63,789 nt of DNA, filler included, from Hyphochytrium catenoides (GCA_900088475.1; 6 parts of 6 records of this genome joined end to end with filler, not necessarily neighbours in it), one strand, 5' to 3'; positions 2,424 through 24,620 are shown, counted from the whole stretch's first letter. Notes: generated by a model from the sequence alone, not told the origin. Program-made: numbers and translations.

Positions 2424-5400
2424 CTAACTGAGATACGCAGCGAGGAAATCTTCAAAGCTGACCGCCCCATGTCCAGTTTTGTCTCTAGGGAGGAGCCAAA
2501 GAGTCGGGTCAAATCATACAGCAAACGTCATAACAATGGCAGAGCATCGATGCGCTTTTCTTCTTTGCCACTTACCGGGTTGAAATCCATCGCTGGAGCT
2601 CCTGCTCTGACATGTCTGGCAGGGACGATCCAACTTGGAGCTTGAGGTCACTGAGGGAGATCAGCCCGTCACCGTCCGCGTCGTACCTCTTGAATATCTC
2701 GCCAATGAACGCCGTGATCTCCGCCGATTGACCTGCTTTCGTGAGTGGTTACTCTCAGTCAGTCTCATCTCTCTATCATGACTTTCGCTCTTTCTCTCTG
2801 CTCCTCTCTGCCTCTCTCTACAATTCTTCCTCTCCCTCTCTTTCCGTCAACTTTCCTCCTCCTTTCTCTCTCTCTGTCTCTGTCTCCCCTCTCTCTCTCT
2901 GTCTCCTCTCTCTCTCTCTCTTTGGTTTTCTTGTCCCCACCTATGCTTTTATCTGCCCACCCATTTGTCCCTTGCCCTGTCTCTCTTCCCTTCAATCCAT
3001 AGCTTGTGTCTCTCTTGTTCCTCGGTCTCTTTCTTTCCCATTCCCTACTGACTCCCCCTATCTGCTCCGCTTCCAAAGCGTCTGAAACAACAAACCTCTG
3101 CTATCCGCCTCATGGTAGCGGCAGAGGGGGCTTCTCTGCGGAGAAAGCTGCTGAACCAAATCTTCGGGTTCTACCATCTCCTGCTCTCTGAACCTGTTTC
3201 GCATGGTCAAGCTGGCCACATCTTCCTCGTAAATACTCGGAGAAGACGGGATCAGGTCTTCTTCACTCTCCCAAGAGCGACGCACATTTTCTTCATTGAA
3301 GCTTGTGGTTCTCTCTTCTCTGACAGAGCTAGTAGCTGCACGGGCTCGCGAAAACGGTAGAAGATGGAGATATGCTCGAGAAAGCTCATAGAAAGTCCAG
3401 CGCTGCTTCCCTCGCTTTCTAACATAGACTTCAAACAAAGCGTCTCCAGGGTCACAGCCACAAGCTAAGAGGGCCATCTTCCCTGCTTGGGGAGTGATCG
3501 CAGACAACGCACCGGAGATAGGACTCCCTTGCGTTTCTTCAACCTGCTGGTCGTCTTCGCCTATTGCTGCTCTGAAGTGAACTCTCAGTTCCTCGCTTTC
3601 TTTTTGGGAAAGTGCTACCCACGTGCCACTGGGACCCTAGGCAAGCAGGAAAAAGGCTTAGCGAGAAATAGGTTCACGTCGACGACAAGAAGTCAAGGCA
3701 AAGCGCCAGGGAGAGAAGTCATGAAACCAAGAGATTAAGGGTAGAATGTGATCGAAGAAAGCAAGCTATGAGTATGGAACGATAGGGGTGCGGAGCAAGT
3801 GGAGATGGCCTTAGCAGAAAAGACGAAAAGAAATCCTCTAACCTGCACCCAGTGCTGCAAGGGAGATCCAGGTCTATGAAGCCCGGCGATCTCTGCATAA
3901 GTCATAATGGACTGGTCCAAAGTGAAGCTTTCAACGACTTCCGCGCCTGTGGACAAGGGTAAAAACGGATACGTATGGTTAAGAAAGTGAGCAGGAAGTT
4001 AGGCTTAGGCCAACTAAGCAACTTGATCTGAAGACCACGTCTAGTAGGTAAAGGCGCACTGAAGGAAGCATTAGGTTGTCGCAACGTAACCATACTCAGG
4101 TAAAAATTGCGGCAGAGTGATGAGAGGAAACGAGTGAGGCCCTACGCTGATGTAGCTCGCGTTCCGCAATTGCAGGACTGATCCCCATTCTTTCCAGGAG
4201 CTGCACCATGGCATCGAAGGATATCCTCTGCACACCAGCCCTTGGGACGCCCTCTACAACCCAGGCGGTCAGTCAATACATCAGATCCTATTCCCTATCC
4301 CTCTATCTCTTCCTCGCTCCCCCATTAACCTGTAGAAGCTACCCATTCCCCAGACCAGTTCACAACTGCCAATAGTTGTCGCTGTCTCTCCTCACCTAAG
4401 TCTGAGAGGGACTGGAAGTGAGCTTGAAATGTGCTGAGCTCTGGCGCCATTCTAAATAGCACTTCCCCATAGGTTAGCTCATTTGGGTCGGCAGCTCTTT
4501 CATCTCCCGCTGCTGACGCCGGGGGTCCGGCTGTGAACTTTTCTGAGAAAGCGAAAAGGCGTTATTAGTAACAAGAGAGATCGCCAGCTTCGCTTTGGCT
4601 GGATCTTGCGCGATCCCAAGCCCATTTCTGGCGTTGCGACACTCACTGCATCTTTGTTCGCTCCTCGCAGTCCTAAGCCCAACGCTATAAATATCCTTCA
4701 CTCGTCTCTATCCAATCACCTACCTGCTTTGATCGTCCATGGATCGGACCCTGGGTCCTTTAGGAGAGATGTCGCTGCAGTAGCTATCTGATCATCCTCC
4801 TTAGGGGCACCTGGCGAAGCTGGTGAAGGGAAGAGACTACTGATTAACCGGTACTGATGGGAAGGTGCAGGTGAGCCCATCATCGCCTGCACCGGAGATC
4901 CTTTAACTTCTGCTCTCTTCTGCGACCTATTTGCAGGCTCTATGTCTGACTGTCGACTCGTCACCCTCTCAAGCGGTCTCTGATCTTGAATGCTTTGGGG
5001 CTGGTCAGACTGACGGCTCTGACTGAAGCCCCTCTTACTCCTCGCCTGGTGGGTGGCTGCCTCCTCATTTTCCCTTTTTCTCTCAGGATCAGAATCTGGC
5101 GACCCCAGGCCCTCGTCTTCCGAAGTGGTAGCGTCTTGAGACTCATCATCAGGTGCTGCTTCGTAAACCTCCTCTAGTTCAGACATAGAGCCCGCTGTTT
5201 TGGAAGGAAAGATAATCAACTAGGAGTAAGGGGTAAAATGCCATTTGCTGGAGGAACTGTTGACGTATGAACTTTGGGAACAACCAGGACCAGAGATGAG
5301 AGTTAGACGGTAAGTTTAGTGAACGGAGAGCCTACTAGGGAGAAAACGAGTACTATCGCGAGGATCTTTTTAGAGTTGTCCGTTGGCAAGAAGCGGCACC

Positions 5401-14400: not shown

Positions 14401-17400
14401 CGTTCTGTTATCTGAACTTTCATTACCATCTGCCTCGCTGATTGTCTTGATGCCTTCACACAGACACTGAAGAATCGTAGCACACACTTGTTTCTGCTCA
14501 CCTTCTCCTCCACTTCGCTCATCTTCTCCTCCTCTTTGGCGCTCGGTCCCTGGTCTCCTGTCCCTGACTTTTGCGGTGGGTCGCACTATGGACTCCAGAC
14601 TCCAGTAGCGTATATCGAAGTCTCCAGATCCTCTACCACCGCTTAAAACGAACGACAGCGAAGGGTAAAATGCTAGAATAGGATCTCTCTGCTTGTGCCC
14701 CAGACAGCGTGTTAGAACTCTCCCAGTCCTGGTAGAGAAGACATACACCAGAGGGTCATCAGCTACGGTTCCAAAAAGCAGCTTTGCCTTTCTGATGAAG
14801 CAGAAGTCTCGCAGGTAGCTTGTGGGTGAAGCTATGGCCAAGTCGTCTGCTATCGTTTCCTGTAACCATGCCAATCTTTCGCTCCTGGGTGTCTGTAGCA
14901 GTTTTCTGACCGTAGCTGGGCTGAAGAGAGAACCACGTGCTGAAGACCGTGCAGGTGCCCGCTTACTTGAGGTTTGAATGGTGCTTAAGTGTAGCGTGTA
15001 GCGTTCGCAGGTTAGGAGGCCCTGGTTTCCATCTCGCACAATGACCGAGCTGTCTGCCGCCGTTGTATTCACTACGATATCCTTCCTGCCCCGTGCCTCT
15101 ACAGCTCCTGTTTCTTCTACCAGGCTTAGCAGACGGCTGCCTTTCGCTTGTGCCACCAGCAAGGAACCCAACATTCGAGAGACTTCGGCAAGGTCTTCGC
15201 TATCGTATCTTTCTAGCAAGTGCCATAGGTCTTGTAGGTCTTCATCCCATGCTGGCCCTGCACTACTATTGACACGGAAATCTTGGCATTTCCTCCTGCC
15301 GATCAAGGATGACGAAAGAGGATCCAGGGCCTGAACATCTCCCTCTAATTCTTGAAGGACATTATTCCAAACCAGAAGGCGGCCATCTCCGAGAAGAAGA
15401 AAGAGGTGGCTACACGATGCATCGGCAACTGCCTCGACCACTTTGTTAGAATAGAACCTGCCACATTCTGGTGAGATATTGGCCAGCGGGATCCGTAAGA
15501 GAGGAGATGAAGCTTGCTGCCAAGAAGGCTCTGACTCCATAACTGCATGTAAAGGATTCTCCATCGCAGCCACAACCTCACTCCATAGAACGCTGTTGCT
15601 GGAATCGTGTTTCTCGGACATAAGGTACCTTGTCATGTGAGCCATGAGGGTTTCGCCGGCCCGTGTGTGTCCAACTGATGGTCCACCAGAATCATCCCGC
15701 GGATGGGGCCCCAGCTGCAAAAGCGTCTTTAGGCTATTGTGTTGCGACAACGCCTGCAATAGCTGTAGACGGTCGATAGGTTTATCTACAGGTGAAGGAG
15801 TGGATGGCGTTGCTTCCTTGCTCTTCCTTCGCGATAACAGCTGTTGCCAGGGCACAGAAGGAAGGGACTGAACGAGATGCCACATAAGCCGCTTGCAGAG
15901 GAATAGCCGCCCTGCAGCCAGTGAACGCATTGTCTCCGGTTCTTTGAACTCTGCAATTAGCATTGTTGGTGAGGCTTCTAAATTGAGACATACATCGTTG
16001 TCGAATAGCGAAGATCACGGATTCAGACTGCCACAGCACAACGGTAGAAAGGCGGACGATATGCTATGGAAAGTCTCTGTAGTAAAGAGATCAGCTTTAG
16101 ATGAGAGAGGTTCGCACCTTCTGCTCCACCTTTTAATGGTAGATGATGGCTCAGCAGTAGTAATGCATACTCGATCCGCAGGTGGACGAACTCAGTGAAG
16201 GAGAAGCTGGACTTAACTCCTGTTCTGCTGGAAATGGTTGACATATCTTGCTCCAACGGAGCAAAGCCATCCATGTAAAAGAAGACGCGCTTTATCTCAG
16301 TGGTGGAGATTTGACCATTTTCGTCTACATTTCCTAGCAGGAAGGATGCAAACAATTCCCGAACCACCCCTTGTGGATCGCTGTCACAGGGTAGTAGCTG
16401 AGTTATGAGGACTGAGGCAGAGTTTTCCAGAGCTAGTAGTTCCTCCTTAGAAAAGCCACCTCCAATGCCCCTGGCTTTATATATAGTTTCAGTCCAGAGC
16501 AATTCTCCCTCTAACTTCATTACACTATTGCTCTCCCCTTTTCTGCAACTGTTAATTACATCAAGCAAGCGCAGAGCCCTTCCTCCCTTCACTGGAGACA
16601 GCACGGGGTTGGTGCGGAGAGCAGCTCCACCGATGCCTGAAGAGTCGGTCTTCATCTCTGATAAAAGACGTTGACTGTCCGCAAACCAGTATCCACCTCC
16701 TGCTCCATCTTCTGTTCCTCTCCATCGTCGATCTCCTGCTTTCGAGAGAGAGAAAGGCTGCCACCCGTAGAAGAACCGGCGCAACAACACGATGATCGGG
16801 CTTCCAAGCAGGTACTGCGAGAAGAAAAGATGTCATGACATGCCCGGTAACAGCGAAACGAAGACGAGAAGATGCTAAGAAGAGTGACCAAACCCAGGCC
16901 CTGCGATGGGTCTGTGAAGCGAGCAAATTCTCCGAGCAAAGTCAGGTTAAGGCTGGAAACGAGGAAGCACAGAGCGGTTCTCCTATACAGATTACCTGCG
17001 ACACATCGTCCCTCTCAACCATTATGCCTGAGGTCAACGAGGGAGAAAGAAAAAAGCCTAGAGGTCTCTGACTGGATGTGCCACATGAACCAAGTAGATG
17101 CCAGGAGACGGATTCTTGGCGCAAGTATCTCTTCTCAAAAGCCGTCTGTACTAGTCGAGAGCCGATTACAGCTTCCCCTTGTTCTGCAGCGTCTGCTATG
17201 ATCTCATTGAGTAACTTTCGCACGTAATGTGGGACACTTCCCTGATGACTTGCGACTGTTACCGACGTATTACAGGATAGGAAAAGCACCTCATCCATAG
17301 GGAAGGAGCGCCGAAGAGGCCTATCGACGGTGAACTCAAGACATAAAGGGTTCTGGGAGGTGACCTTTACGTTTTTGATACTCCGGGCTTCGAGACGTGC

Positions 17401-20400
17401 ACCGAAGGGAAATGAGAGCGAGGAGCCTACTAGCATTTCGGGTTTTAGTCTTTCCGTTTCTCCCATGAAGAGAGAAGAGGCTGAAGGGATCTTGACACCG
17501 AAGGTGAGGACGCCAGCCTCAGCAGAAGCTAGTAAGGAACACTTCACAGACTCGTCTTCTCCTTGCTTCCTGTCTGCTGTTTCCGCCCGTGGCCTGCCCA
17601 ATAGATCTACTGCCGATGCTTGATTTTTCTGCCCAGTGCTGGTAGAACGGCTACGTGCAGGACTCCTAGGTCGGCTTTCTTTCACCTCTTTTGCAAGGGG
17701 GTTCTGCATCACATCGTGGTCAGTAAAAGTTGAAGTAATAGAGACAAGCTTAATCGCAATTTCCCGTCCATGGAGCAAGTCGCCGTGGGATTAAAGCTTG
17801 AGAAAGGAATGCCGTGAAAGTGCGCCTAGGAGAGCTACCAGAGCTTGGAGGCACATCTACAATGGTGTACCTGCTTGCTGGTCAACCGAGCTTCGGGTCG
17901 TACAGATCTTAGCGCTCTTTCCCTAGTCTTCTTGATAATGGGGCGCTTGGTATTCTCGTTTGGTCCTTCTGTAGTCAATGTGCTCGGTGCCTCGCTAGTC
18001 TCCTCTTGAGAGTTGTGAGCTCCAACAGAGGCTATGCGTGTCTCCTTTTGAGCTGGAGGGTATTCTTTTGCTGCCTGGTCGGCTTTGGGGAGATCTGCAT
18101 TTCGGACTTTCTTTGGGCTCATTAATCTTTTTGCCTTGGTTACTTGTCTCTCTTGATTTTCTTGGTGCGAGAGAGAGGAGAGTCTAAAGCGCAGAAGAGA
18201 TACGCCTATCTCCAGCTCCCTGCAGCTTGCGAGTAGATAGTCCATGTCAAAGTCGGCTGGAAGGTATAAAGAGCAGTCCTACAAGGACGATCCAATTAGA
18301 AGTGTACCACCTCTCCATGATAAATTTTATAGGACGCTCGAGCTAAGATTCAGGAGGCGAATAGGGTGACAGCTTCACGGGAGTAACTCCGTACCTCGTC
18401 CTCCCGGAAGCCGATTGCAATAAGCAGCTTCACTGCGCCAATGGAACCCAAAATCTTATCCGAACTGTAAACGCGAGAGAGTCCAGATATGTTGACATCG
18501 GGCCGACTCGAAGTCAGAACTCGTCCCAAATGACTGATAATTGTCTCATGCAGAACAAGCAGCCTCTTGAGCTCCTCAGAGCTCCCTAAGGAGAAGGTTA
18601 GCAGGTTTGCCAATGGACACTTTCTGATGGCATATAGCCCGAGAAAAAGAGGAAGGATGGGCATTCGAGAGGTGAGCGATAGCTAGGCACACTTCATACC
18701 TGGCAATCTCATGTAGTATGCGGCACAGGCTGCCATGAAGGAGACATCCGGGTGCTGCTCAAGTACTGTGCAATGTAGTCTCAGCAGTCTCCTGGCCTTC
18801 TCCAAGCGTTCTCCTATTTCCTCAGGGAAGCTCTTGTTCTCCAAAGTCGGCAATTCTAACTTCATGGCCCTGATCTCTCCGTCTTCACCCACCTCCTTCT
18901 TGAAGCCGCAAGCGTGGAACACTTCAAAGACTAATCAAGGATATAACGGCAGCGACCATTCCTCAACAACTGTGCGCTCCCCTACGTTCGCATTAGCTTA
19001 CCTCCCTGCACGTTCATTTGGAGGTCTCGCTCGGGAGGCTCCTCTATGGGAATCCGTCTGAAGGACACAGTTCTTGGAGCAGAAAGCAGAAGTTCGATGC
19101 GACCACAGGCTTCTTTGAGGGCTACGATCGCTTGGGATCGTGGATTATGTCTTTTTATATTCCCAAGCGCCGAAAGGATTGGACCGTGATCCTCGGCTCC
19201 TATTGGCTCTGATCCTCTGGCTCCTGGGTGGATATCGTTAGAAGCTACTATCCAATGTTTGCCGTGGGGCGAACTTAGCTGACCGATCGCGCACTGGATG
19301 ACAGGTTCAAAGTACTTTACGAACTCCTGCCAGGAAATCGATCCGTCGCGATTGCTGTCCCGCTCAAGAATCCATTGCTTAACAGCCCTATAACGTGCCG
19401 GGTTGGGAAAGTCAGCAGGCTGTGCTCTTTACGGTGATGGCCTTCTGGAGCTCATCCCCCTTTCACCTCTACCATCACGCTGAGCAGCACTTACCTATGG
19501 CTGCTATCTAATCCGCGCTCTCTGAACGCATCTTGTACATCTTGGGCACTTAGTAAGCCGGTTTTGCTCTTGTCAAGATGATCAAATGCCCGCTGCAATA
19601 CCTCCAGTTGCCTTTGATGTATTGAGAGCAAGGCCTCTTCTGATGGAGTAGAAGAGGGGGCCTTTTCCTCCTTTGAGTACCCTTTGGTATCAGCTCTTGG
19701 CATGCTAGAAGAAGATTTGCTCCTATTAGGGCTTGTCCTCCCTAAGGCATTGGTGGCTTCATAGCCAGCTATTCTGGCATCCTGTCCTTTTAAACCTTTC
19801 TCCTTTGGTTGTTTCGTTCTCAGATGGGTTACCGGGACGTCTAGATTCCTCTTCTCGCTATCCAACGATGTAATGATTTCCTCTAGGTCTGTCTTCGCTC
19901 GATGTAATATGTTTAAAGTTTGCGGGGGAAGGACAAATCCTGGAGAAGGTACTTGGAGAAGACAAAGTTAGTGCAAACAGCATTTTGTCACGTACATAAA
20001 GGGTGTCTATAAATGCGACATGCCCTTCTCAGTCTGACAGGGGAGAACATTAGGACGAAAAGGAAAAGCAGTCAAGAAGCAGAATGCCTAAATAGAGGAG
20101 GTCAGGCTCTTCCAACCATTATTCACGGCATCCAATGGCACATTCTTCAGCACGAACAGGTCTGCCTCCTTGTAATAGACGAACCCCACTGCCGTCATCA
20201 GGGATATCTTATCAATCTCTTCGAAGCCTCCAATCTTGTTCTGGAAGACGGGATTTTTCTGCAGAAAGGGAGAGTGCAATCCCGATGAGAATGCAACACC
20301 TCAACGGTACATTACAAGTTCTCGATGACAGTACTATGGGATGCACATCTGTGTTCTATAACGTACTACGACAGAGAGAGTAAGGAGACATGAGACCGAA

Positions 20401-23400
20401 TGACATGCAATAAGAAGAATCTAGGAAATGTTGAGCGCGAGAGCGGCCAAAGCTAAATGAAGTCTAGACCCCAAGATGCTTGACGACTTTTACCCCTTTA
20501 ATTCTCCAAAGACGCGGATGACCGGGCTGGTTGAGGACGTTCGTGACGGAGTTGAGTAGAAGACGTAGAGCATCCAGCACATCCATACTTTCCCGCCCAC
20601 GGCCTTTCAGGTCTTGCACTACCTCAAATAGGCTAGGCATGGAGTTGAGTGCACTCAATTCCTTCTCAATTTCTTTGACACGCGAAGAGAGGATCTAGCA
20701 GATGAGATTAAGGAAGTTGTGGCCCCAATAGATTAATGTTGCTGATTCTTACAAGCTACGCTACGTGGCATAGTTGTACCTTGTTGATCTCGTCCGGAAG
20801 TGTTGCCAGAGGCTGGTAGCGCTCTTCCAGCCCCTCTGGAGATTCATCTCCCTTTAGGAAAAAAGCTCCCTCAAGGCCCATGCGGCTTTTGCCTGGTTCA
20901 CGGAGATCCCTAAAGCCGACAGCAGCCAACAATTCCTTCCCCCCTTTTAAACATCACATATCAGTGGAGGTGGTCTTAACGGGTATAACCAATCAGAATA
21001 GTGGCTTTCCTGCGTTCGAATGCTTCATATTCTTCTTACCTCTGTATTGGATTAACTGAGCGAAGATATCTTCGTCCTCCAGATCAATTATCACATTCTG
21101 GGCGTCCTGCCGTTCCTGAATTTTTCGACAGAGATTGACAACTTTCTGCGCGCACTCTCTCACACCGTGTGGTGGTGCATGCGAGCGGAGCAGAGAAAAG
21201 GCAGAAGATACAGATGGAAGGTCACTGTCTTCGTAAAAGATGGAATTGAAAGAGGAAAGGAGCTCAGGGAGACTTATTCTTGGACTCTGTTCTTGCAAAT
21301 GCTTCAGTTCGGCCTAATACGTAGACCATACGGGGGGTGAGTAGGGCCTTACACTATGCGGGTGCTATAGCGTGATGGACGACACTTGCATGATCACTGC
21401 GATAAAACCGTAGTACTCAATAGATTCGCATGAAGGACAGACCATGAAGGAAAACAGTGCAAAAAGAAGAGTTCACACTAGCGTTTGGTTTTCATTTTTG
21501 CAGGCCGACTTCGGCTTAGCAGAACACCATACGAGGACGAATGAGAGCTTTCACTGAAAAATGAAGGTAATCCGGTAAGTCACCTCATAGCTCTTCGGGT
21601 CCCTGTTAAGAATCCTTAACCATTCAGCGACTTGCCCAGTCGATATATCTCCATTCTCTTCGCTGTCAATGGAGTCAAATGCCTCCCTAGCCCTCTTAAG
21701 CAGTATCACCTGCTTGTAAGGTCTACCGGCTAGACATGCAGGAGAGGGCCACGAGAGGTTCGTGGTAAATTGACGATGTGAGAGGGCAATCTCAAGAAAG
21801 TTAGTATAATGCAGGACGGGCCAAACATTTTGAGCCATTAGACGAGTGAGAAGGATAGGTCTGAGATGGCTCTTACAGGACAGGCGCCTGATCAGCACAT
21901 CATGGGCTCTCTCGCTGCCTTCCCAATTTCCCTCTTTGGCGAAGATGGCAGCGGCTAAGCTGCCAATCGTGGTTTCCTGATGCAGGTACACGCTCTCCTG
22001 CCTTGGCTCCTTATTCTGGTGGCCACTGCCTCCCCTCCATATCTGTGGCACGAACAAGTAGTGAGCTGTTGCAGGTGCACCGCACAAGGGGTAGCAAGAA
22101 ACGATCAAATAAGCACCGAATCAGAGGAAGATATTGGGTACGAAAAATAACAGGGTAATTGAGCTCTACGACGCAACTTGGAAAATACAGGCTAGAAAAG
22201 ACAGGATTGTAAGAGCTACCATGTTGTGGTAAGGCTCCTTGCCGTGATCAGCTTCTCTCTCGTCAGCGTAGAGGGCGTGATACAACGCAAAAACCTCTCC
22301 TAGGCTGAGCGCGTCTACTCCGAATAAATCAGCTTCATCTAGGCATTCCTCCACTTGCGCCTTAGTGGCGAAGCAGTTCAGATCCTCAAAGGCCTTTACG
22401 AGAAGAGATACGGGTAACTTCCTTTCAGGGAGAGAACAGCGTTCCCTAAAGACTGCGCCGATGGCTTTAGCCTCAAGTCTGCCCAATCTTCGGCCCCAGT
22501 ACTGCACGATCTGGTCTTCCTCGTCGTTGGCAGCAAAGCGTCCCATCTTGGGCACTTCGTCCTTCTCTTCTCTCTTCCTATCCATCACCTGTATTCCAGT
22601 CTTTGAAAAAGATCAGGAGTCACAAAAGACACCCTCCCGACCTATTCAGTGAATGAAAGTTCTTACCCCCTTATCGTCTTTGTCGTCTCTACCATCCGAG
22701 GACGCTATGTTGAGCAGATCATCTCCTCTCCGCGCAACAATGTGCATCAAACACCTCAGATAGTCCTCGAAAGGAAGGTAGTCGTGGAATTTCTTCCCAT
22801 TCACTTGCAGCCATCTCCTGATGTCCTCTTCTGCCACAGCTATCCCCACAGACTTGAAACCCAAGCGGAACTTGGAAGCCATTGTTACTATTCTGGGACC
22901 TTGAAGAGTTTGCACCGTTCTGGCAACCGACAAAAAAGACTTTTCGAGTCTTTGCTTCTCACGCTCGCCGACTAAAAATGATAAGAGTGCTGGTAGAGGC
23001 TTAAAACCTGACCGCCGCTCTTCCAATTCCCTAGATGAGCGCACGTCCTTCACGGAGACGTCTTTACGAAGGATGATACGTGCGTATTCCACTAAGCACT
23101 TTGCATCTTCGATTTCGCTAAGTGAAGAAAAGTAAGGGTTTGGGGACAATGAAGGATCACAAATGCAGGAAAGGCTGCTCACTCTTTCTCTTGAATCTTA
23201 GCTTCTGCAGGTGGTGTTTGCAAAGGCCGTACGTACTTCTGTGGCACGTTGTCACAAACTTCGCCATCGTCGTAGCGTACCTACGGTAAGGAGGTTGATG
23301 AGTTGACGATACATAAGCAAGTACAAGGGTCACCGCGGGTTGCTCCCTACCGTGAAAGAACCGTCGCCATGCCTTGCAAGGACCGTCGCCATGTACCATG

Positions 23401-24620
23401 ATGGAACCGCCTTTGCCGCACCGATGGATATGCCACGTCTCCATCGTGCTTCCACCCTCTGCTCATCGCCTATGTCACGATCACTAGCGTAGTCATCACG
23501 CAAATCATTTCCTTTATCTAATTTGGCCTTCTTCTGCATTCCCTCTTTCGAGCCTCTCTCACTCTTCTCCTCTGCTGCGGGTACTTCAAGTTGCTTATAA
23601 TCTGCAACAAACTTTTGCCGACGTCCATCCTCAAATTCAACGTCAATGGTTCCATTGGGTCTACACTTGCGTACGAATGCCCGAGAGAAAGTCCCCTTGT
23701 CATCGTCCTTGGCTAAAACTGTATCACCCTCATCGAGCAGAGGACGACCTCCATCTACTCTCTCCTGTCTTCCCTCATCTACTTCTTTGTCAGACAAGAC
23801 GGTTGTCTTCAGACTTGGAACGGTATGCAGAAGGCTGCGGCGCACTCTCGTTTCTACGGCCCCATGCGCATACTTCACGTCATAAGTGCCATCACGATGA
23901 ACCTTGGTAATTGTTGCTCGAAAGAGTTCCGGTCGTTCTCTGTAATTCACATCGACCAGACTCCCAACCCCCAATGGTTCCTGAACCTTCTGTCCAAAGT
24001 CCTCTATACCTACATCGATATGGGCCTTATACATAGGACGAACTAACTCCGCCTTCACCTTCTTCTCTTTGTCACCATCCTCATACTCAATATCGTAGGT
24101 GCCATCAGTGTGGAGCTTGATCACCCTTCCCCGATACACTTTGGAACCACCCTTGTAATGGACTTCCACAGAAGCTCCTACTTCGATAGTGCCAATTCTG
24201 CTCTGGGTACTCTGGAACTCTGCCTCGGATAGATCACTAGCAGAAGCGGATACGGGATGTACAAATTCTGCATGTACTCTCACTTCCGTATCTCCATCGA
24301 GATACCTTACATCGTAGGTACCATCGGTATGAACCTTGGAAATTCTTGCCCTGTACAGCTTTGATTTTCTTCTGTAGTTGACATCGACAAGTGAACCGGC
24401 CTTTAGGGTTACCTCCCATTCTGTCTCCTTAGCACTCTTAGCTCCTGGCTCTTCAACACTGCCTGGTTCTGCAACCAGATGCACGTATTCTGGATTCACT
24501 CGACGCTCTGTGGTCCCATCCCGATACCTTACGTCGTAGGTGTCATCCAGATGAGCTTTAATGACCGTTCCACAATAGAGTTTCGATCGACCCTTATAGT
24601 TCACATCCACGGTAGAGCCA
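2424..24620 (-). CDS. Giant multi-exon multidomain protein (Agenet/Tudor repeats, EF-hands, PUB-like domains, WD40, pseudokinase, helical region, C-terminal EF-hand pair); 5' end truncated by contig end
   Basis: Consecutive minus-strand ORFs join in frame through GT-AG introns at every junction I tested. About six Agenet/Tudor repeats (GSxVDVNY..SKLY..I.KVH.DGTYDV.Y.DG..E.RV) at 23230-24610. EF-hand loops DSEENGDIS (~21660), DKSKTGLLS (~19570), DSNRDGSISWQEF (~19340), DENGQIS (~16320), DPEGNG (~14050), DADGDGLISLSDL (~2670), DKTGHGAVSFEDF (~2470). PUB-like motifs (LLNSVTNVLNQPGHPRLWRIK..NPVFQNKI..LMTAVGF). WD40 repeats (GHKQ..LSGG..DFDIRYW; GHSAALKSL..ILSVATDGKVCFWN). Kinase-like LRDLSPANILV at ~9550. 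Stop TAG at 2426-2424. Confidence 0.8.

Follow-up and report, generated by a model that had tools for sequence, protein, structure and literature searches.

Does a stretch of more than 22 kb in the genome of Hyphochytrium catenoides, a zoosporic stramenopile related to oomycetes, encode one giant scaffold protein, and what might such a protein do? The locus occupies the minus strand of contig C402 (24,620 bases), from the contig edge at 24619 to a stop codon at 2426-2424; positions are those of the window, by which we mean the whole 63,789 nucleotides (nt) of H. catenoides DNA analyzed, filler included. An intronless cytosolic HSP70 encoded elsewhere in this genome is closest to oomycete HSP70s (83 to 89% identity), and the spliced-leader pattern of Perkinsus and dinoflagellates is absent. 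A sequence-only reading of this locus had proposed a protein of more than 5,000 amino acids (aa) combining Tudor/Agenet repeats, EF-hands, PUB-like domains, WD40 repeats, a kinase-like domain, and a long helical region. We find real, intron-rich protein-coding sequence at this locus, most likely a single gene, whose first third, from the Tudor array through the PUB domains, is conserved in a collinear gene elsewhere.

Gene model

Exons were chained by dynamic programming on codon and splice-site scores trained on unambiguous long exons, and both ends of the model were curated by hand. The resulting frame-consistent model comprises 41 exons and 40 GT-AG introns, with 4,909 codons and zero internal stops; 29 of the 40 donors begin with GTA. 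In this model the same-strand exons splice in frame over more than 22 kb, as first proposed, down to the TAG. Modelled introns and exons have medians of 135 and 249 nt, respectively, the same order as the genome-wide means of 208 and 228 nt in a genome with many short introns (PMC5795050), and the intron count is about 10 times the genome average. The longest open exon stretch spans 662 codons, the coding log-odds profile shows one consistent minus-strand codon bias across about 20 kb, and minus-strand coding potential is nearly unbroken from 24.6 to 12.3 kb and from 11.0 to 5.0 kb. Spacers between the long open exons are mostly 54 to 250 nt long with good splice sites; intergenic spacing, as we calculate it from published exon/intron statistics and gene number, is about 1.7 kb (PMC5795050), far above these values. 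No N gap occurs within the gene across the whole 24.6- to 2.4-kb stretch. Exon structure is uncertain in the model below 13850, the uncertain region being 13.85 to 9.6 kb. All searches reported here were run exon by exon, the joined spliced protein having been translated only for checks of frame, length, and stops; genome scans covered 61 Mb in 4,759 records.

The N terminus is cut off by the contig edge at 24619, and the start codon lies beyond the contig. The contig itself supports only 4,909 codons; a length above 5,000 aa is nonetheless plausible, given that the N terminus runs off it. Elsewhere in the genome, contig C1177 (bases 3-170, minus strand; L020) carries a Met-start open reading frame (ORF; MPKSNSPQKEDINRHQIHLNER...) that enters one Tudor repeat and exits at the contig start. 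That repeat is about 57 to 60% identical to those of the window, the nearest of all arrays in the genome, and the orientation of its ORF is compatible with the missing 5′ end; the collinear contig described below likewise opens with Met, a short leader, and the first Tudor repeat.

The Tudor array and a collinear gene

Six Tudor/Agenet-like repeats form the readable start of the protein (24619-23183, minus strand). The exon at 23333-24610 scores above threshold for both Pfam families, Agenet (PF05641; E 2.8e-13, 50.6 bits against a cut-off of 27) and TUDOR (PF00567; E 1.6e-9, 38.3 bits against a cut-off of 23), and the array weakly matches the KDM4A hybrid Tudor in a PDB sequence search. Conserved Tyr, Tyr, Tyr, and Asp positions recur in the repeats (VxVxY...KxY...DGTYDVxYxDG), and these conserved aromatics may be able to cage methyl-lysine or methyl-arginine. 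A 70-nt intron (23350-23281) interrupts the sixth repeat, which resumes perfectly beyond it (GDGSFTV followed by RYDDGEVCDNVPQKYVRPL, RYDDGEV...). A further intron, of 65 nt, links the array to the next, EF-hand-like region; no gene boundary fits there. The array shares tandem repeats of about 50 aa with the Tudor/Agenet fold with known multi-Tudor proteins (the TDRD family, the KDM4A hybrid Tudor, and plant Agenet/Tudor arrays) but lacks a staphylococcal nuclease-like extension, demethylase, or chromatin module.

At least five further long arrays of the same repeat occur in the genome (C167:140168-142759, C227:2-4138, C4439:288962-293656, C4079:62-1712, and C3755:39252-40445), with open frames of up to 1,639 aa. 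The Tudor/Agenet repeat family is evidently expanded in Hyphochytrium, independently of this gene.

The Tudor exon, used as query in a word search, brought up three proteins without annotation (P0204, P0205, and P0206). P0204 is encoded on an 8,915-nt Logan contig, L021 (SRR23287133_721665), which has a near-identical twin, L024 (SRR23287134_62045). L021 and the window are collinear, their matching segments sharing one strand and one order at about 30% identity, and L021 keeps open exons. The Tudor array matches L021:319-1866 (E 2e-37), the exon at 22600-22220 matches 3387-4088 (E 7e-4), the EF-hand exon matches 4932-5250 with the loop LDEDRDGEI (E 0.016), the exon at 21313-21040 matches 5419-5541 (E 4.6e-5), the exon beginning GGKELLAAVGF matches 6453-6521 (E 1.6e-4), and the second PUB domain (PUB2) matches 7131-7514 (E 2.3e-5); a third PUB-like unit follows PUB2 before the contig ends. 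The order shared by both L021 and L024 is thus Tudor array, EF-like region, EF-hand, PUB1, PUB2, and third PUB-like unit, and this collinearity indicates that at least two organisms carry the Tudor-EF-PUB third as one conserved gene. The two versions differ in that PUB1 and PUB2 are both canonical in L021, whereas PUB1 of the window has decayed, and in that no EF-hand pair was noticed by eye, rather than by formal scan, between PUB2 and PUB3 in L021. This orthologue places the N-terminal third under selection in at least two organisms and offers a route to finding the family elsewhere.

The other two proteins from the word search were rejected as orthologues. P0205 (L022; Logan SRR12053442, 58-3812) is a different protein, a 633-aa Tudor-array ORF that is divergent from an adjoining 317-aa globin-domain gene; the contig stops before any sequence downstream of the array. 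P0206 (L023; ENA ERZ19051831 scaffold_6968, 670-5677), from a metagenome, is also different: its Tudor array is followed directly by a 1,207-aa ORF of IQ-like (LQASVRRREAK) and coiled-coil repeats. Two contigs found with the degenerate DNA pattern GG[KR]ELLAAVGF (L025 and L026) were set aside as having no other similarity.

A metagenome scan with the large exon gave no match, and an exact look-up of the 645-aa exon gave no record. For the four parts of the protein searched, no orthologue beyond L021 and L024 was found; only the WD40 exon was searched without restriction, and the word search is blind to proteins far longer than the query exon, so full-length orthologues may well exist in oomycetes or other stramenopiles. 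The gene goes unmentioned in the supplements of the H. catenoides genome paper, and a full-text literature search found no paper combining these domains. Across phmmer, word searches, metagenome scans, and full-text papers, with one exon searched without restriction, no characterized or annotated protein with this architecture turned up, and a search for the same architecture in other organisms recovered its Tudor-to-PUB third.

PUB domains

The PUB region begins with a degenerate two-exon unit, PUB-like 1 (21313-20780), recognized by collinearity with L021; its second exon is the one that begins GGKELLAAVGF. PUB2 follows in two exons, 20694-20494 and 20258-20117, separated by a 235-nt intron. 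PUB-like 3 (19212-19002 and 18930-18809) and PUB-like 4 (18585-18395) are degenerate and were placed by their register on the PUB profile. A genome-wide six-frame Pfam scan found eight PUB domains, none of them on this contig, where the intron splits PUB2.

PUB2 is the only unit for which both homology and motif point to a PUB domain. Its second half, scored as an exon alone, reaches 17.1 bits against Pfam PUB (PF09409; E 0.005, cut-off 34.3), and aligned with six canonical PUB domains of the same genome, PUB2 gives an hhalign probability of 86% (E 4.9e-6). Of the motif R-x-I-x-x-x-N-x-x-F it retains Ile, Asn, and Phe, with Trp in place of the invariant Arg, and it also has the helix motif G-x-x-L-L-x-A-x-G-F. 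The Asn and Arg are invariant in the six canonical domains and are both lost in PUB1, PUB3, and PUB4. In the window, PUB1 has no Pfam or hhalign match; PUB3 and PUB4 align in the right register, yet hhalign gives them a probability of only 6 to 10%, and neither has a Pfam match. The four PUB-like pieces aligned too poorly in MAFFT to serve as profiles.

The collinear contig clarifies this picture. Its PUB2 is a single uninterrupted ORF (7131-7514) that scores 47.5 bits against Pfam PUB (E 1.7e-12, cut-off 34.3), and the two PUB2 exons of the window map to residues 5-73 and 76-111 of this ORF. Because the exons abut on an uninterrupted frame, the predicted 235-nt intron is independently validated. 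PUB1 of L021 is canonical (RFWRINSANNAFF): L021:5917-6105 is a PUB domain by Pfam (E 4.9e-5), and L021:6453-6521 is 70% identical to the window exon beginning GGKELLAAVGF. These matches imply that the PUB-like units of the window descend from real PUB domains. Of the "up to four" such domains first proposed, PUB2 thus stands on hhalign and L021, while the other three are recognizable at motif level only.

Docking of p97/Cdc48 by PUB2 is plausible, and such docking was probably ancestral for PUB1 and PUB2. PUB2 is homologous to the PUB domain of the p97/Cdc48 adaptors PNGase/NGLY1, UBXD1/UBXN6, and HOIP/RNF31. To our knowledge, known PUB proteins have one PUB each, beside an enzymatic or UBX module; here, by contrast, three to four tandem PUB-like units, mostly decayed, lie amid Tudor, EF-hand, WD40, and pseudokinase modules, and the locus carries no UBX, transglutaminase, or RBR domain.

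EF-hand modules and the WD40 region

We counted as an EF-hand a segment passing the Pfam threshold with a 12-residue loop carrying calcium ligands at positions 1, 3, 5, and 12. The terminal hand, with its strict loop at 2682-2647, and the strict loop at 19359-19324 fit this definition, the loop at 16331-16296 comes near it, and the other EF-like segments fall short. Between the Tudor array and PUB1, three exons (23117-21584) encode degenerate EF-hand-like helical pairs, recognized by Pfam EF-hand_6 (E 0.0064) and homology to L021. The intron within this region at 22666-22601 has strong splice sites; loops there are mostly degenerate, and the region closes with the loop DSEENGDISTGQ at about 21667-21632. 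Between PUB2 and PUB3, an EF-hand pair (19600-19300) spans the intron 19494-19388, with matches to EF-hand_6 (E 1.6e-5) and EF-hand_7 (E 6.4e-5) and further EF-hand_1/7 matches in the next exon; its second loop, DSNRDGSISWQE (19359-19324), is strictly canonical.

Beyond PUB4, a low-complexity linker and a region of about 236 aa of unknown fold (18278-16996) have no Pfam or PDB match, and AlphaFold2 run without an alignment on the exon at 17703-16996 was uninformative (predicted local distance difference test score, 36). The next exon (16814-16118) contains an EF-hand pair-like segment with a near-canonical loop, NVDENGQISTTE (16331-16296); it has no Pfam match at E 0.01 and aligns weakly to the calmodulin N-lobe (E 0.45).

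The WD40/β-propeller region (15977-12190) includes one exon of 1,826 nt. A phmmer search with its 662-aa open stretch against 1.84 billion representatives returned 83 proteins (best E 7e-14), all matching through one stretch of about 75 residues (residues 400-475, approximately), and the six matches examined were all generic multi-WD40 proteins. A second WD40 repeat at 13435-13722 has a Pfam match below the cut-off (PF00400; E 3.4e-4, 21.5 bits, cut-off 27), and an Atlas feature search, offered as a lead only, placed the region among β-propeller families at 0.89. An EF-hand-like insert lies within the propeller region at 14080-13847.

The protein ends in an EF-hand pair (2732-2424) encoded by exons 2732-2576 and 2484-2427, followed by the TAG. 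Its first hand passes Pfam for EF-hand_1 (PF00036; 27.4 bits, cut-off 25.4) and matches EF-hand_7 (PF13499; E 1.4e-5), and the pair contains a strict calcium loop at 2682-2647. Calcium sensing by three to four loops is plausible.

Kinase-like domain, helical region, and C-terminal end

Downstream of the propeller, a degenerate kinase-like domain (10544-9263) is suggested by Pfam and by alignments with solved kinases. The catalytic-loop exon alone scores below the Pkinase threshold (PF00069; E 5.4e-6, 26.4 bits, cut-off 31.7), and 437 solved kinase sequences match at E values up to 1, in alignments that span helix E to the DFG position. Within 9849-9616 there is a hinge-like motif, LVAEYLPGWRSL, in a small preceding exon; 9637-9460 encodes the catalytic loop VLRDLSPANILV and LKINSLAQA. 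LRD replaces HRD, and the catalytic Asp and Asn are retained; where DFG would be, SLA (by hidden Markov model alignment) or NSL (by eye) stands, neither with an Asp. ORFs of the N-lobe match no solved kinase in the PDB at E values up to 10, and no Gly-rich loop is visible. On its motifs, the domain is best called a pseudokinase. The kinase-like and helical exons have no paralogue in the genome.

The helical region that follows (9171-5400), about 1,200 aa in at least seven exons, is ARM/HEAT-like on an Atlas lead only. Seven helical exons match no Pfam family by hmmscan, and a word search with the helical exon 7416-8012 found no homologues among proteins of 110 to 348 aa. For the exon at 7994-7491, the Atlas feature search (a protein-language-model look-up) returned ARM-repeat clusters and an "ULK4 kinase (fragment)" cluster at 0.93 to 0.95, the ULK4-fragment cluster ranking second. 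Across the WD40 and helical exons, Atlas neighbors include IFT140, CFAP69, and ARMC9 clusters; these, too, are leads only.

This arrangement recalls ULK4, in which about 1,100 aa of ARM repeats come after the kinase domain and which in humans has degraded DFG (NFC) and HRD (FCD) motifs (10.1101/2020.06.18.159293). Both share a kinase-like domain whose catalytic motifs are lost, with about 1,100 to 1,300 helical-repeat residues behind it. However, solved kinases match the domain only generically, with ULK4 absent from the 60 best, and the module lies C-terminal to about 3,000 residues in our model, whereas the ULK4 kinase domain is N-terminal. The Pfam model HEAT_ULK4 (PF23606) finds nothing in the window. 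ULK4 membership is therefore unsupported, while the similar organization stands. A looser likeness links the module to SCYL1-3 and Vps15/PIK3R4, scaffolds that also join a pseudokinase to an ARM/HEAT solenoid; in Vps15 the WD40 repeats follow the solenoid, while here they precede the kinase.

The sole HEAT_ULK4 match in the genome lies on another contig (C3299:52274-52408, minus strand; L027 and L028) and is weak and below the cut-off (E 2.6e-4, 20.9 bits; E 0.027 in the genome-wide scan). It sits in a multi-exon minus-strand gene, and the ORFs of the 3.5 kb fetched upstream contain no kinase.

Between the solenoid and the terminal EF-hands lie an acidic, Ser-rich segment (5194-4724), which is probably disordered, and the C-terminal exons of the model, down to 3096; the exons of this stretch (5194-3096, minus strand) have no meaningful Pfam match. 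The exon at 3636-3096 joins the terminal EF-hand exons through a phase-1 intron (3095-2733) with the frame kept. The terminal EF-hand exon has no upstream in-frame Met and therefore needs an upstream exon. Pfam, hhalign, motif, and exon-reading evidence together agree with the domains first listed for this locus and with their N-to-C order on one strand.

A candidate calcium-regulated scaffold

The best explanation, to which we give about an even chance, is one gene of about 41 exons with at least 4,909 codons in the contig. Its product would carry, in order, a six- to seven-fold Tudor/Agenet array, EF-like modules, a PUB tandem with one canonical and three decayed units, more EF-hands, WD40 repeats with an EF-like insert, a dead kinase-like domain, an ARM/HEAT-like solenoid of about 1,200 residues, a disordered acidic stretch, and the C-terminal EF-hand pair. 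No intact enzymatic center was found, and the economical reading is a large noncatalytic scaffold. In such a scaffold, three to four functional EF-hand loops would confer calcium sensitivity. A partner bearing a PUB-interacting motif would bind to PUB2, the C-terminal tail of Cdc48/p97 being the most plausible one. Binding of clients, which may be methylated, flagellar, or centrosomal proteins, would fall to the Tudor array, the propeller, and the pseudokinase-solenoid half. A Ca2+-regulated, p97/Cdc48-recruiting scaffold is thus a candidate role suggested by the domain assignments; methyl-mark reading by the Tudor array is likewise suggested by its conserved aromatic positions only. The domains themselves are all familiar; what appears new is their arrangement, mainly a tandem PUB array amid Tudor, EF-hand, propeller, and pseudokinase-solenoid modules.

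Alternative readings

How much of the locus belongs to one gene can be graded along its length. Tudor through PUB is very probably one gene, and the WD40 region probably belongs to it; for the entire 22 kb as one transcript, we see about an even chance. Several results weigh against the full scaffold. The collinear contig ends after its third PUB-like segment and covers the Tudor-EF-PUB third only. Minus-strand coding potential falls at 12.2 to 10.9 kb and again at 4.46 to 3.7 kb, and the splice sites that bridge both weak stretches score poorly. PUB2 scores below the Pfam cut-off, PUB1, PUB3, and PUB4 fail every statistical test in the window and have lost the conserved Asn, many EF-hand-like segments lack calcium ligands, and the kinase N-lobe is unrecognizable.

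The weak stretches and their weak splice sites mean that two or three adjacent same-strand genes, artificially fused by the model, are possible, and we give this arrangement a real but less than even chance. A first gene (Tudor, EF, PUB, EF, and WD40) would then run from 24.6 kb to about 12.2 or 11.8 kb, a second, with the pseudokinase and ARM solenoid in ULK4-like size and order, from about 11.0 to about 4.3 kb, and possibly a third, small gene ending in the EF-hand pair from 3.6 to 2.4 kb. The weak stretch at 12189-10893 (minus strand) holds either small exons or possibly a gene boundary, judging by its log-odds profile and splice sites. Low coding potential at 12.2 to 11.1 kb and at 4.46 to 3.7 kb fits such boundaries, as do the long introns that a single gene needs there (751 and 383 nt, with poor site scores). 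The ORF at 12672-12193 could end at its own stop codon, but a very strong donor (GAG|GTATGT at 12336) lies just ahead of that end and a strong acceptor at 11979, making it probable that splicing carries on beyond 12.2 kb. Possible starts for separate genes exist in the Met codons of exon 10762-10627, about 130 residues ahead of the kinase-like domain, and in the one Met of exon 3636-3096; the ORF at 11042-10848, however, has good coding potential and no Met and so needs an upstream exon, and the terminal EF-hand exon also lacks a Met. In ULK4, which other eukaryotes have as a separate protein, a kinase domain likewise precedes about 1,100 aa of ARM repeats, so that size and order agree, and the Atlas ranking of the ULK4-fragment cluster for one helical exon points the same way, whereas HEAT_ULK4 has no match in the window and only the weak genome match on another contig.

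A more radical doubt, that the locus is a decaying pseudogene, an assembly chimera, or a set of chance ORFs, could draw on the several segments without a database match and on the badly degraded kinase N-lobe and three PUB-like segments. It is very hard to reconcile with open exons as long as 662 codons, a codon bias that stays consistent across about 20 kb, canonical splice sites throughout, the lack of N gaps, and a collinear orthologue that keeps its open exons at about 30% identity, and we regard it as highly improbable. The remaining alternative accepts one giant scaffold that does not work through p97/Cdc48: the largely decayed PUB array would be a structural or other peptide-binding module, and the protein a cytoskeletal or flagellar-base component. 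The invariant Asn and Arg are missing from PUB1, PUB3, and PUB4, whose scores are no better than noise, and PUB2 has Trp at the invariant Arg position. PUB domains such as that of HOIP bind partners besides p97, and combinations of WD40, ARM, and EF-hand domains are common in axonemal and centrosomal proteins; the IFT140, CFAP69, and ARMC9 clusters among the Atlas neighbors are leads in the same direction. Nevertheless, the canonical PUB1 and PUB2 of L021 suggest that the ancestral protein probably bound a PUB-interacting motif, and PUB2 of the window keeps the motif Ile, Asn, and Phe. We give a scaffold independent of p97 a chance ranging from less than even to about even.

The calcium-regulated, p97-recruiting scaffold can also be taken further, to a version that we think improbable: a giant adaptor, present in at least two protist lineages, whose tandem PUB domains would simultaneously bind several C-terminal tails of a single Cdc48/p97 hexamer under the gating of calcium-loaded EF-hands, while the Tudor array would deliver methylated clients and a fused ULK4-like pseudokinase-ARM module would tether the assembly to flagellar or centrosomal machinery. 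If true, that adaptor would be a calcium-switched segregase-recruitment platform without counterpart in animals, fungi, or plants. If the locus encodes one protein, few genes in this little-studied lineage of stramenopiles would be larger, and it would be a candidate link between calcium signaling, the Cdc48/p97 segregase, and methyl-mark reading.

Repeats and sequence downstream of the gene

Long (GA)n/(TC)n microsatellites occur at window positions 2770-2960, about 480-700, and 1200-1520, and they give rise to spurious RERERE and SLSLSL ORFs on both strands. The first lies within the intron 3095-2733, the last long one in the model. Assembly gaps fall inside (GA)n/(TC)n repeats at two places outside the gene (N runs at 263-282 and 1493-1514). 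A CAG/CTG trinucleotide repeat at about 1780-1960 produces poly-Q/A/S/L runs in the ORFs 1567-2061 (plus strand) and 1685-2173 (minus strand); lying downstream of the stop codon, it is probably 3′ untranslated region or intergenic sequence. Further downstream, beside an N gap, the minus strand at 290-570 has clear coding potential (log-odds 10 to 11) and may be an exon of the next gene.

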